From Ministeria vibrans ATCC 50519 (taxonomy: Eukaryota > Protista > Filasterea), in the NCBI GenBank assembly GCA_943704425.1, contig CALSCP010000031.1, forward strand, positions 101,869 to 161,833: a stretch of DNA of 59,965 bases, written 5' to 3'. The notes under the pieces are model-generated. The model was not told where the DNA came from. It saw only the letters and a program-made list of their open reading frames with translations, and did no database searches. A program made the translations under genes and the position numbers. Position 1 is the first letter of the stretch. The number at the start of each line of letters is the position of its first letter. Shown in pieces: positions 32,038 to 37,668 of the stretch.

Positions 32038-32220
32038 TTGACCTTAAGAGGAAGCAAACAGTAAAGACAATGAGAAATCTGTGAACCATTTAGTGATCAG
32101 TGCTGTGAACCATTCAATGATCAGTGCTTCCTATAGATGTTTCTCGAAAATTTTAGTTCTTCTTTGTACAAAAGATCGCGGTCTCTCGGCCCTCCCATTC
32201 CTTATTGTTATTGGGTTGGT

Positions 32221-32858
32221 TCACTGCTTGCCAATTGCCTTCTCCACTGTAAAGAAATGATTGCTCGTGTGTGCGTCGTGTTTGCGATGTTCCGCTTTGA
32301 GATGACCTATCACACAGAAAAGACATCAATTCATCCGCAATTGTATCATTTCTCTCTGTCGTACCCTGAGCATCTACAAAAAGATCGTGTTTTTGTCCGT
32401 GACACGTGTGCGTAAAGGCAACGTCGCCCGATTCGTTCTCGTGCGTTGAGAAATGGCACTCTTCGGTGCGTTTGGCGCTTGTGTGAATCTGTGAGTAACA
32501 GAATAAATACAAAACCCATTTCTCGCACTCTTTCGTTGTGACGTCTCGCTCAGCACCCACGTACCTCTCCCTTGTCTGTCACTGCAACATACAGTCCTGA
32601 CGAGGCCTTGATTGTCACAGTGTGCTTGTGGGCATCACCAACCTCTGTTTGCAGACGACATTGCAACATCAGTCAAACGTCGAGAAAAAAAGCGCGAGAA
32701 GTCGCACTTCGAATTCTCTTACCGAGTGTGAAAACAAACGGAGCGCCACAAACACCGTCAGCCTCCGCGACGTGCGTGCCATGTACGTGTTTGCCCTTGA
32801 TCTCCAAGTATGACTTGGTCGATGCGTGGCGCAGTGTGACTGGGACGTTGGTGTGCAT
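32221..32858 (-). CDS. FGF-like / hisactophilin-like His-rich beta-trefoil protein, 141 aa (exons 32858-32723, 32644-32565, 32488-32365, 32306-32221)
   Basis: Four phase-consistent GT-AG exons run from ATG to TGA. The sequence contains YLEI..K.VHGT, VTIK.SSGLYVAVTDKGE, S.K.TEECHF, LFVDAQG and NHF, colinear with FGF core motifs. Confidence 0.75.
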
Positions 32859-33107
32859 ATTGGAAAATCAAAGAAAAAAAGTGATCTTCAATAATCAATT
32901 AATTTAAAAATAAATTAATATTATTAAATTATTAATCATTATTAATTAATGATTAAAAAAATTTAAAACAAAAGTTAGAAAACAAAACAATAATTAATAA
33001 TAATAATAATAATTATACGTCTTAACGTTAATAATAATAAATAATTAGTATTGTAATTCTAAATATTAATATCTTATATTTTTTATTATTGTAAACTCAA
33101 GTCTGTC

Positions 33108-36100
33108 TCAACGAAACAGAGCAACAAGCAGCGCATCGAGCGCACTGTACAATAGGTGCTTGTTGAGGCGGCGATCCTGCAGCATGTCAAAGAGGCGCGA
33201 CACGCCGTGGATGGAGTTGAAACGGCCCACCATGCGCTGGGCCGTCTCGGGCACTCGGTGCAGCACAAGCAGACGCGCAGTCGCACGCGCATCATCCGCC
33301 CCAGCACCCCGATTCCCTTCCCGCTCATCGCCAGTCATCACTCCTCTCCGCCCCTCAAACACAGTTCCATTGGGAAACAAATAGGAGCTCAGCCGAGACA
33401 TGTACGATAACATCGCTTGCTCATTCGTCAGCGCATAACACTCTTCCAAAATCTACACAGCACACTATCAGTGAACGCTCATTCTCCCCTCTCTCTCTCT
33501 CTTGTGTCTTACTCGTCGGTTGATCTCATCTCCATACCACTGCTCCAAAATCTGTCGGGTCAAATTTAATGCTTTGCGTCTCAACCAATGATTTCGCGAG
33601 CGTAACTCAAACGCCTACAATACAACACCAAAAAATGATAGTCAGAATAATTTAGCAAAATAATAATAATAATTATGATTAATACTATAATGCCTTTTCA
33701 TACCTCTTCAAACAGTGCAAAAAGCGCATCCAACAGAATCTGGGCATTTTCCCGATCAAACCCTTCTCCGCTCTCTCTTCCTCCCTCTTGTTCCTCCATC
33801 TTCTTCTCATGTTCCTTCTTCTTCCTCTTCTTATTCTCCTCCACAAGTCGTTTTGCTCTTTGTTCCGTCCGCTCTCGTTCCAACAATCCACTCACAACCC
33901 TGAGAGAAAAAAAAACAATAATGAATTACAAAGAAAGAGAAGAACAACAACTCTTAACCCGTTATCTTCAGCAATGAACTCTGGCGCTTCCTGCACTCCA
34001 CCGTAAGGCATTTGCTGCTGCTGACCATAGCTACTTGTCTTCTCTTTGGCAGTTCCTGAGTTGTTCCGCGCTACTCGTCGAATCTTCTGCAGTTTCTCCG
34101 TCGCCCGTCGCACCAACTTTCGCATTGCCATCTTCCCTTCTTCCCCGTCCCGCCCTGGCGACGGATCACTCAACATCCCTATGTACAAGCAACGCATAAA
34201 TGTCATTTCCTTCCTTCTTTCTCTCCCAATCCCTCTCAATCTTTTCTTTCTGTTTCTTTCTTGGAAACCCAAAAATATTATAATTATTTCGTACCGTCCG
34301 ACTCAATCTTCAGGAGCAGATGCACTTCTTCCGATTCACGCAGTATTTCATCCGACAACAATCTGTTGAGCCAGTCGTTCAGCGTCCGTTCACACTACAC
34401 AACAAATCAGATTTTCCCATCGCTTTTCTCTTGCTTTCATAAAAGTTTGTACCTCCTTTGGGTTCCGGAGCTCCTCTTTGGGCGACGGAAAGGGCAACAA
34501 ACGAACCTTTTTAAACTTTTCGGCAAGCGAGAGATGCGCCTGACGAAAATCGGCAAGACGACGGGCCACGACAAAGCCAGTCGTCGTAGGGCTGACGGGG
34601 GAGGAAGAAGAGGAAGAAGAGGACGTGACAGTGGAAGCACGCACAACCTGGATAAAGTACAGAATGCGGTTGGCGCGCACGTGAACTCCACCGCCGTCGT
34701 CGTGCTCGCTCGAGACAATGCTCGCACTCACAATGTGATGATTGTCTTGCAGTGCGTTCACTTGCTGTTGTAGTTGTTTGTGGGCGTGTCGCTCTTCGAC
34801 CATAGCAAGCAGTTGGACCAGCTCCGTCTCGAGCTCTTCACGTTGTCCCATGAGCCGTTGTGCCTGCTCGTGCGTCTCCGCCCGCTCCATCAGCGTGTCT
34901 AGCACAGCCTGTTGCTCTCGCAGTAGCACCACCGCCGCCCCAATGGGATCGTACGACGCCTGAACCTGCGCCCGCTCCTCCGCGTCCCGCTCGCGTGCCA
35001 CCGACGATGCACCAGACACCACACTCGACTGGTCGTCAGTTGTCACATCAACCCCCATCGCCTTTTCTTCCTCGTCGTCGTCTTTGCTCGACAATTCGCT
35101 CCCCTCTTCTTCTCCTTCCGTCCCGTCATGAACACTCACCGAGTCCCCTTCACACGCGAGCGTCAGCTCCATCGACCTGCTTCCCTCCCCCGACTCCTCC
35201 TCCTCTTCCGCCTCTCGTACACTCCTCTTTCTCCCTGGCCTTCCTTTCTCGTCCTCAGCACTGCTCGCATCACTACTTGGCATAACATCATGATCCAAAT
35301 CGTACAGCAGATTCCGATACAAGTCGCTGCGTTGGAAACGAGGAAAATATCGCTCACGCATCCGACGCAACACTGTGTTTTGCGCCCGATCAAAGCAGTC
35401 GGCACCCAACTCATCGACACTCGCTGCCCTCCCACCACCACCACTCGACGCAGAACTTGATGCAGCACTTCCAAAGCTACTGCTCCTTGAGCGGTCCCTC
35501 AGACGCATTTCTACTGCACGCACCGTCGACTCGTCCAACTTCACCTGTAGCGGTGCGCCCGAGCTAAAGTGCAGCGTGAAAATGTTGAAAGCCTCCTGAC
35601 GGACCTGATCCGGCTCGCTTGCCAAATGCTCCTGCGCAAACGCACGAAACTGATTTACGTTGATCCACAGCTGCAGCAGTGCCGTCGCCTTCTCGCGACA
35701 CATAAACTCCATAAAGTACGACAGCGCATTGATGTTCCCCAAAACACTGTCAAGGGTCATTTTGCTGCGCCGCTTCGCTCTCGCCAGCAACTGCACATGA
35801 TACTGGTGCTGTTGTTGCTGCTGCTGTTCGCTTTTCAACTGTTGTCGTACTTTGAGACGCTCACTGCGAGTGCGTCGCCATCGTGAAAGAGGATTGCGTG
35901 ACAGTGACGACCCCTTTCGCGCCGCATCGCCACCCTGACTCTCAATGGCCCCCACCCCAGCCACCCCCACCTCCTCCNNNNNNNNNNGCCAGACGTCATG
36001 TTTGGGCCCCACCTCCTCCTCACTCCCTTCTTCTTCTTCTTCTTTTTCTGCTTCTGCTGTCTTGGCATGGCGTGCCACCGAAAAGGTCCGCGAAGATACA

Positions 36101-37668
36101 ACCAGTGTGTCTGGTGTGGCTGGCGTGCTACGCATGTGGTATGGTTGTGGTGTCGGTGTCGGTGTCGTCTGGTCAAGCAAAGTCATTGTGTCGCGTCGCG
36201 AGGGCGATTGGCTCTGAAAGGGTGATGCGTCGGCAACTACAGTGGTATCGCGCTGAAGCAACGGTGCCCTGAAATGCAAGGGAGGGCACTGGACCTCGAG
36301 AAGGAGTTCGCCCACAGCGTCGTGTTGGTGCGCGGCAAACACGCCAAACCACTGTTTGTGTGGCTCACCGTCCGCCAACAACAACTCTGTACCGTCCGCG
36401 TCGCCACTAAGACGCACCGTAGTCTCACCCAACACCACTGCGTTCACAAAGGGGTTCCATTCGTAGACCACAATGCGCACTGTGTCGTCCTCGCGCTCCA
36501 TGCCATCGAGGTCCACCGTGAACACTTCGTCCCACCACAGCGTGTCGCGCGCAACGTTGGCCGAACGCAGCTCCGTGTCACCATAGAACAGCACACAGAA
36601 GGGATAGCTCGCACCCACGTGAGAGGGAAGCGCCGAAAAGTTTTTTCCTTTGTACAATCGAATAGTGAGCAAGCGCACCGGCGACGGTGGTGGTGGCAGT
36701 GGTGGTGGTGGAGAAGGATGAGAAGGAACGCAAGGAGATGGTTGGTCCTCCTGTGCTGTCCCTGCTGTTGAATCATTGATGAGCAGTGAGAGAATGATGT
36801 TGTTGATAACGTCTGGGTCGGTAATGGATTCGACAAGGGGAGCGAGACACTGGCAGACGAGTACTTCGCGCAGCAGCAGGCGCAGAGTGTCCGAGCGAGC
36901 TTCGTGCTCGGGCAGCAAATGCGCGATGAGCACCTCGGCGACGTTGCGCAAGTAGGTCGCCTCGTTGTCGCGAGACTGACACCCAAAATGGAGGTAGCTG
37001 CCACCACGTGCGGGGTCGGAGAAGTAGGCATCGCGCGTCACGTCCGACGCACACGCGCGGTGAAACTCGCGCAGCTGCACAATAAGTGTGTGCGACACAC
37101 TGTGTGTAAAGATCATGGCAAGGTCGACACGACGCGCTCGAGCACGCAATCGCTGCGCAGCGTCCCGCAAAATAGCCTCGGCCGCAAGCGGGAAGGTAGG
37201 GTCGCCGCTGACGGCAGAGGTGTACCAGGGACGCACAAAATCACGAACGACGTAATGCACCAAATCATCCAACACCTTCGGAAGCGCTTCAGTGCTCGCG
37301 CCTATCGCAGTGGCATCACCCCTTTCTGCTGATGGTGCCTGTGATAGTAGTGGTAGTGGTGGTGGCTCGCGTAGTGTAGCGCTACGCTGCTGTACGTAAC
37401 GGTGGACCGTTTTTGCAAGCTCGAGGTAGAGCTGAAAAAAAACACACGTCCGCCGCGAAGTTCAATTCGTCACAGATCACACAATACACACACCAACTCC
37501 AGAGCAGCTTACCAAGAGCGAGTTTCCCATGGCCAAGAGGTACCCGACCGCGACAAGCACGAGGGCCACGGCGACCCGTTCGTAGCTGTGCGTCGCAGCC
37601 AAAAGTGCCGCACATACCACAACACCAATGGCAACGACAGCCGATTTTGTAGGCGTCGCCCACACCAT
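33108..37668 (-). CDS. Sorting nexin of the SNX13/14/19/25 (Mdm1) class: TM-PXA-C2-RGS-PX-Nexin_C
   Basis: N-terminal hydrophobic segments; PXA (VVRDFVRPWY, LLREVL..CL.P..ESITDPDVIN); RGS (FMEFM...LQLW..VNQFR, FDRAQ..V...M...YFPRFQRSDLY); PX (VARRLADFRQAH..L..KF); Nexin_C (LFEEV/FELR...WLRR, NKHLLYSALD). Confidence 0.9.

Follow-up and report, generated by a model that had tools for sequence, protein, structure and literature searches.

A spliced four-exon gene of Ministeria vibrans encodes a predicted stand-alone fascin-type beta-trefoil rich in histidine

We analyzed a stretch of 59,965 nucleotides from Ministeria vibrans ATCC 50519 (contig CALSCP010000031.1, positions 101,869 to 161,833; the whole stretch is called the window, and positions are counted from its first letter) and find on its minus strand, at 32221-32858, a real, single-copy, transcribed and spliced gene of four exons. 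Its product of 141 amino acids is predicted, from homology to fascin domains, to fold as one stand-alone fascin-type beta-trefoil, and it is loaded with histidines whose placement and charge context suggest that the protein may act as a pH-dependent charge switch. The parts of the gene are as follows, in the direction of transcription; X8, X17, X20 and X16 are four public sequencing runs, each from a different study.

32859..32877, minus strand: short 5' untranslated region (UTR), approximate; RNA-run contigs extend to 32852, and depth is low in the bin 32852-32877
32723..32858, minus strand: exon 1, with the ATG at 32858, 45 codons and the first base of codon 46; it corresponds to the predicted first trefoil leaf
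32645..32722, minus strand: intron 1, 78 nucleotides, GTAAGA..CAG, phase 1; spliced out in contigs of X8, X17, X20 and X16
32565..32644, minus strand: exon 2, E46-E72
32489..32564, minus strand: intron 2, 76 nucleotides, GTACGT..CAG, phase 0; spliced out in contigs of X8, X17, X20 and X16
32365..32488, minus strand: exon 3, I73-Q113 and the first base of G114
32307..32364, minus strand: intron 3, 58 nucleotides, GTACGA..TAG, phase 1; spliced out in contigs of X8 and X17
32221..32306, minus strand: coding part of exon 4, G114-Q141, with the TGA at 32223-32221
32140..32220, minus strand: 3' UTR of at least 80 nucleotides; a spliced X8 contig covers 32150-32304 and continues 10 letters further

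The joined exons make 426 nucleotides, that is, 141 codons and a single terminal TGA stop, with the codons of E46 (G, then AG) and G114 (G, then GT) split by introns. All three introns have GT..AG ends and are poorer in GC (0.38-0.46) than the exons (0.48-0.57). The ATG at 32858 is the first start codon past an in-frame stop, and upstream of the contig ends on the 32877 side, the RNA contigs show no joint, loose end or extra exon.

The stretch 32150-32900 is present in 20 public runs, which come from 11 studies and include algae and marine metagenomes. We read splicing from the assembled contigs of the four runs named above; X20 is recorded as polyA RNA-seq from a marine metagenome, while the organism label of X17 is that of the source of this DNA. 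The joints 32644>32723 (intron 1) and 32488>32565 (intron 2) are present in all four runs, the joint 32304(+2)>32363(+2) (intron 3) is present in X8 and X17, and at every joint the plus strand reads CT..AC, hence GT..AG on the strand of the gene. When we searched the genome (29.7 Mb in 2860 contigs) for copies of the exons, each was found once, at the intron-containing locus only; therefore, the joined form must be RNA. An original prediction, made from the letters of the window, had proposed that four exons join in phase into 141 residues and that the list of open reading frames shows only pieces of them. Indeed, the translations of the exon bodies reproduce its peptide exactly, that list does hold only pieces of the gene, and all three of the junctions that it drew are found in spliced contigs. 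X8 also has unspliced contigs beside the spliced ones, at 32461-32594 (intron 2) and 32616-32752 (intron 1); these could stem from pre-mRNA, from intron retention or from carried-over DNA, among which contigs cannot distinguish.

The fold assignment comes from fascin profiles that we built ourselves. The 346-residue open frame of the genome's own fascin (contig C2213) retrieved 47 fascins, from which 166 domains were cut, aligned and turned into a hidden Markov model (HMM); the source fascins that were checked score 155-237 bits with Pfam Fascin. The joined protein scores 28.5 bits with this HMM (E 7.8e-11 for one sequence), with HMM positions 6-120 aligned to residues 8-135, while none of 2000 composition-preserving shuffles exceeds 15.1 bits and the reversed sequence scores 1.6. 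Because this first HMM took in domain 1 out of register, we then built separate clean profiles. A profile of domain 1 only (31 sequences) gives 31.2 bits, with HMM positions 43-131 on residues 43-137 and in register (shuffle maximum 9.2), and a profile of domains 2-4 (93 sequences) gives 28.6 bits, with HMM positions 5-115 on residues 7-127 (shuffle maximum 11.6). These scores of 28.5-31.2 bits correspond to single-sequence E values of about 1e-10 to 1e-11. Similarly, hhalign with the single sequence as query reports a probability of 80%, E 1.4e-5, over 113 columns.

The match belongs to the spliced product in its native order. Among all 24 possible orders of the four exons, the native order scores best with the fascin HMM, and no score above 11.2 bits is seen among 608 control open reading frames taken from the window and from two other loci. 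Taken singly, exons 1-4 score 1.7, 11.7, 2.8 and 2.3 bits, which is why searches made exon by exon all came back blank. The agreement of two non-overlapping training sets points to a fascin-type trefoil domain, and the beta-trefoil claim of the original prediction is thus upheld by a match of near full length. An internal three-fold repeat is insignificant by sequence (z = 0) and is not among the grounds for the trefoil assignment.

Neighbors of exon 1 in the ESM Atlas fit this assignment. All the named ones are beta-trefoils (Fascin, FRG1, RicinB_lectin_2, MIR/Ins145_P3_rec, Fascin/FRG1-like and CDtoxinA), with the Fascin and FRG1 clusters placed ahead of those of lectins. FRG1, DUF569 and single prokaryotic Fascin/FRG1-like proteins resemble the 141-residue protein in being stand-alone fascin-like trefoils that occur among these neighbors, but none of them is reported to be rich in histidine, and the likeness is drawn from the language-model neighborhood of exon 1. 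With the Fascin domain (PF06268) itself, the protein shares the leaf motifs G-x-Y-[LV], K-G-E and x-F-x-[LV]-E. In contrast, fascin is about 490 residues long and consists of four trefoils in tandem, with the sites for actin bundling formed between domains, whereas here we find a single domain of 141 residues with five times the histidine content of fascin domains. The genome also has an ordinary four-domain fascin on contig C2213, and because this sits elsewhere, the trefoil gene is not the fascin orthologue. By Smith-Waterman comparison, the trefoil protein is weakly above shuffles against that fascin (z 2.2-2.4). The C2213 fascin is nearest to environmental sequences (63-67% identity), then to those of Pigoraptor (EukProt Opistho-1/2, 48%) and Capsaspora (47%).

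What sets the protein apart from fascin domains is its composition. It contains 18 histidines (12.8%), 3 cysteines and no tryptophan, and its isoelectric point (pI) is 6.8; by comparison, histidine accounts on average for 2.4%, and at most for 6.0%, of the residues in the 166 fascin domains. The N-terminus, MHTNVPVTLRHAS, has no hydrophobic leader. Thus, the absence of a signal peptide and the count of 18 histidines in 141 residues, both noted in the original prediction, hold for the joined translation. In the alignment with the fascin profile, 17 of the 18 histidines fall on weakly conserved non-hydrophobic columns or in insertions, off the core, while a hydrophobic residue is kept at 18 of the 21 fascin columns in which the probability of a hydrophobic residue is at least 0.6. 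The charged residues other than histidine almost balance (15 Lys+Arg versus 17 Asp+Glu) and, since these nearly cancel, the net charge swings across pH 6.0-7.5: the calculated values are +12.6, +7.0, +2.0, -0.9, -2.4 and -3.2 at pH 5.5, 6.0, 6.5, 7.0, 7.5 and 8.0, with zero crossed near pH 6.8.

We give roughly even chances to the idea, argued by analogy, that this stand-alone fascin-type trefoil works as a histidine-based charge switch that binds acidic partners below about pH 6.8. The cytosolic trefoil would then be a pH-titratable electrostatic adaptor. When the cytosol acidifies, the trefoil, now net positive, would bind acidic partners such as F-actin and acidic membrane lipids, and when the cytosol alkalinizes, it would release them. 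Both the pH switching and the binding partners are what we infer from the scheme described for Dictyostelium hisactophilin, here without the N-terminal myristoyl switch.

To our knowledge, hisactophilin of Dictyostelium discoideum (PDB 1HCD and 1HCE) is the only well-studied protein with this design of a trefoil as a histidine charge switch. The likeness is one of design: both proteins are single small trefoils (predicted, in our case) without a signal peptide, in which histidines are distributed across the surface and the remaining charges come close to balance, so that the net charge reverses its sign around physiological pH. In hisactophilin, a single trefoil carries 31 His, 10 Lys+Arg and 13 Asp+Glu, every one at its surface, and binding to actin and membranes is regulated by pH via a myristoyl switch on the N-terminal glycine (PMC13405390). 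Both are also orphans by sequence, as hisactophilin has no close homologues (PMC9945329) and exon searches detect no homologue of the 141-residue protein. We judge the analogy with hisactophilin, which the original prediction had drawn, to be a good one, given a single histidine-rich trefoil with a pI of 6.8 and a calculated charge that changes sign near neutral pH. The two proteins differ in that hisactophilin has 118 residues, of which 31 (26%) are histidine, compared to 18 of 141 (13%) here, and comes from an amoebozoan rather than from a holozoan-like marine protist, that is, from a different supergroup. Furthermore, the 141-residue protein starts Met-His-Thr and so lacks the N-terminal glycine needed for myristoylation; because residue 2 is His rather than Gly, it has no myristoyl switch. 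A stronger proposal would make the protein the holozoan counterpart of hisactophilin, with a histidine-loaded trefoil that stands alone and in which a fascin-domain signal can still be detected; this is possible, but we consider it doubtful.

Several observations weigh against the reading of the protein as a fascin-type charge switch. Its histidine content is half that of hisactophilin and it has no myristoylation site, and actin or lipid binding is argued purely by analogy. The fascin profiles are ones that we built, other than the curated model of Pfam, and identity to single fascin domains is 16-26%. A recent duplication of domain 1 of the genome's own fascin was considered and rejected, as identity to that domain is 19%, no nearer than to the domains of other species; with identities in this range, the protein is an old or fast-evolving relative rather than a recent copy. 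In sequence searches of the PDB with exons 1-3 singly, no trefoil chain was found, and the matches were chance ones (beta-lactamase, cytochrome c7) or none. Finally, no orthologue was found in the exon searches of the protein collection, of the representatives (exon 1) and of the JGI contigs, so conservation cannot support a function.

The individual searches gave the following results. Pfam, run exon by exon at E<=10, reports no match, neither to FGF (the fibroblast growth factor family) nor to Fascin, for which the gathering scores are 24 and 23.1 bits, respectively; the Fascin result is blank as well even though the joined protein matches our own fascin profiles. A six-frame search of the genome with Pfam FGF and Fascin likewise reports nothing at the trefoil locus. 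In a collection of 5.8 billion proteins, the 135-residue open frame that holds exon 3 finds only the same frame, on an ENA metagenome contig. This 666-bp scaffold (L001) is identical to the window at about 32108-32773, and thus the organism was present in an environmental sample; the frame itself (P0001) is a meaningless 135-residue read-through that stems from a prokaryote-style gene call on L001. Among JGI metagenome contigs no relative was found with exon 3 and exon 1 as queries, and exon 3 has no usable match in the ESM Atlas. The lone match of exon 1 among 1.84 billion representatives (P0002; HMMER, E 2e-5) was rejected as a tandem-repeat artefact: its 283 residues consist of a 53-residue unit in five copies, translated from a tandem DNA repeat, and by summing these copies it scores against exon 1 and against several unrelated Pfam families as well. 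In the search for paralogues, exons 1-3 proved to be single-copy, and a weak match of exon 1 on contig C2280 was rejected, as it lies in a His/Thr-rich stretch that looks non-coding.

The same fold and the same histidines could serve other ends. If the protein instead binds or buffers metal (Zn, Ni or Cu) in the cytosol through H-x-H and H-x-x-H pairs, which we think unlikely, one would point to 141 residues that include 3 Cys and 18 His, of which 17 are at non-core positions, and to the groups H24/H26/H29, H51/H53, H99/C101/H102 and H120/H123/H126 on neighboring positions of predicted beta-strands, where several His have i/i+2 spacing and the side chains would therefore lie on the same face of the strand. 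However, the near-neutral balance of the other charges fits a pH switch equally well, the exon-wise Pfam search matched no known metal-binding family or motif, and there are no metal-handling genes nearby. Many signal-less lectins of fungi and protists are single trefoils of about 140-160 residues, so that the size and single-trefoil form of our protein would also agree with a cytoplasmic lectin or inhibitor (ricin-B-like sugar binding, or protease inhibition of the Kunitz or mycocypin kind) in which the richness in histidine is incidental. The RicinB_lectin_2 and CDtoxinA clusters among the Atlas neighbors of exon 1 are consistent with this idea, but they are outranked there by the Fascin and FRG1 clusters. 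Moreover, the protein has no tryptophan and no Q-x-W repeats, and each leaf ends in an 'x-F' of the fascin/FGF type; we consider a lectin or inhibitor highly improbable.

The original prediction had favored yet another reading, in which the gene encodes a stand-alone, signal-less relative of the FGFs that is older than animals and has an intracellular role, as FGF11-14 do. The resemblance is local. FGFs (PF00167, including FGF11-14) are beta-trefoils of similar size, FGF1/2 and FGF11-14 also have no signal peptide, and the 141-residue protein shares with FGFs the motifs G-L-Y, K-G-E and E-C-x-F. With the FGF signature G-x-[LIM]-x-[STAGP]-x(6,7)-[DENA]-C-x-[FLM]-x-[EQ]-x(6)-Y (PROSITE PS00247), residues 71-85 agree over the first two thirds, up to C-x-F, and an equal fit occurs in only 7 of 20000 shuffles. 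The signature is incomplete, however, since it is broken at both of the last fixed positions, where Thr stands for [EQ] and Asp for the final Tyr. The lineage would also be relevant, as the genome's fascin is nearest to filasterean ones. According to a review (PMC8226934), the probable origin of the FGFs is a trefoil domain, FGF-like in kind, of an ancestor of the choanoflagellate type; the remark in the original prediction that FGF-like domains have been noted in choanoflagellates thus has a source. In contrast, FGF signaling is described as arising with eumetazoans, and two conserved intron positions, ici1 and ici2, are recognized in the FGF core (10.1101/2024.08.30.610304). The original prediction itself noted that introns 1 and 2 of the trefoil gene, although alike in phase, appear a few codons away from the two FGF core introns.

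The motifs that had been read as specific to FGFs also occur in fascins. With Pfam FGF, the genuine four-domain fascins P0015, P0017 and P0019 reach 31-33 bits over roughly a single leaf (residues 57-104), which exceeds the cut-off of 24, and in the column of Cys83, 10 of the 32 fascin domain-2 sequences have Cys, with Asp before it and Phe two positions after. Because fascins score with Pfam FGF and their domain 2 has the same Cys, the shared motifs are features of trefoil leaves. An argument that mapped the stretch of the fascins matched by FGF onto the 141-residue protein was dropped, as the leaves align in more than one register. Pfam FGF reports nothing at the locus within the exon-wise scope of that search, but nothing can be read from this, since Fascin likewise gives a blank when tested exon by exon. 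More telling are the fascin profiles, which cover the whole domain of the joined protein, and the Atlas neighbors of exon 1, among which there is no FGF cluster. The original prediction had itself stated that better scores with fascin- or ricin-type trefoils, together with no FGF-specific signal, would speak against it, and this is the outcome that we obtained. We therefore regard a pre-metazoan FGF relative as barely credible and retain the fascin-type trefoil as the preferred assignment.

The most FGF-like site in the genome lies elsewhere. It is an open frame of 391 residues at L002:853-2025 on the minus strand, which corresponds to about 6745-7917 of contig C1478, and it has two trefoil-like units. 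Pfam FGF scores it at 24.2 bits (cut-off 24), a partial and borderline match that covers residues 121-175 and only HMM positions 4-58, while Fascin gives 15.7 bits and RicinB_lectin_2 gives 14.2 bits. Its likeness to the 141-residue protein is at chance level (z 1.2).

In the neighborhood of the trefoil gene, we found nothing that bears on its function. The features upstream of the gene are these.

32860..33100, no strand assigned: AT-rich spacer of 240 bp between the 3' end of the sorting-nexin gene and the start of the trefoil gene; presumed promoter of the trefoil gene
33108-37275, minus strand: SNX13/14-type sorting nexin, the upstream neighbor on the same strand, identified with Pfam

The sorting nexin has PXA-C2-RGS-PX at 34393-37275 in one open frame of 961 residues, in which the C2 between PXA and RGS scores 33.7 bits with Pfam, and Nexin_C in a separate last exon (Pfam match at 33111-33449 on the minus strand; the exon ends at 33108). 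On the other side, a gene in which Pfam reports no match runs toward the trefoil gene and ends near 32060. Two tandem copies of a 24-nucleotide unit, which differ by three mismatches, lie at 32080-32127 between the 3' ends of these two genes; they are roughly 95-140 nucleotides beyond the stop of the trefoil gene and may be inside its 3' UTR.

These results remove an unsupported claim of a pre-animal FGF and explain how it came about, since single fascin leaves look FGF-like even to Pfam FGF. Because genuine fascins pass the FGF gathering score, lone Pfam FGF matches in protists should be read with care. What takes the place of the FGF claim is an expressed, small and easily testable protein, a predicted fascin-type trefoil whose surface may have been turned into a histidine charge switch. 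If its binding to actin or membranes is pH-dependent, then a sensor of the hisactophilin type either arose twice from actin-crosslinking trefoils or is an old design. If the protein is indeed a counterpart of hisactophilin, it would be the first sequence bridge from that orphan to the fascin family, and one found in a close unicellular relative of animals. A second, independent example of this design, in a filopodia-bearing relative of animals, would aid the study of how the actin cortex is linked to pH sensing and of how the surface of a trefoil is repurposed.
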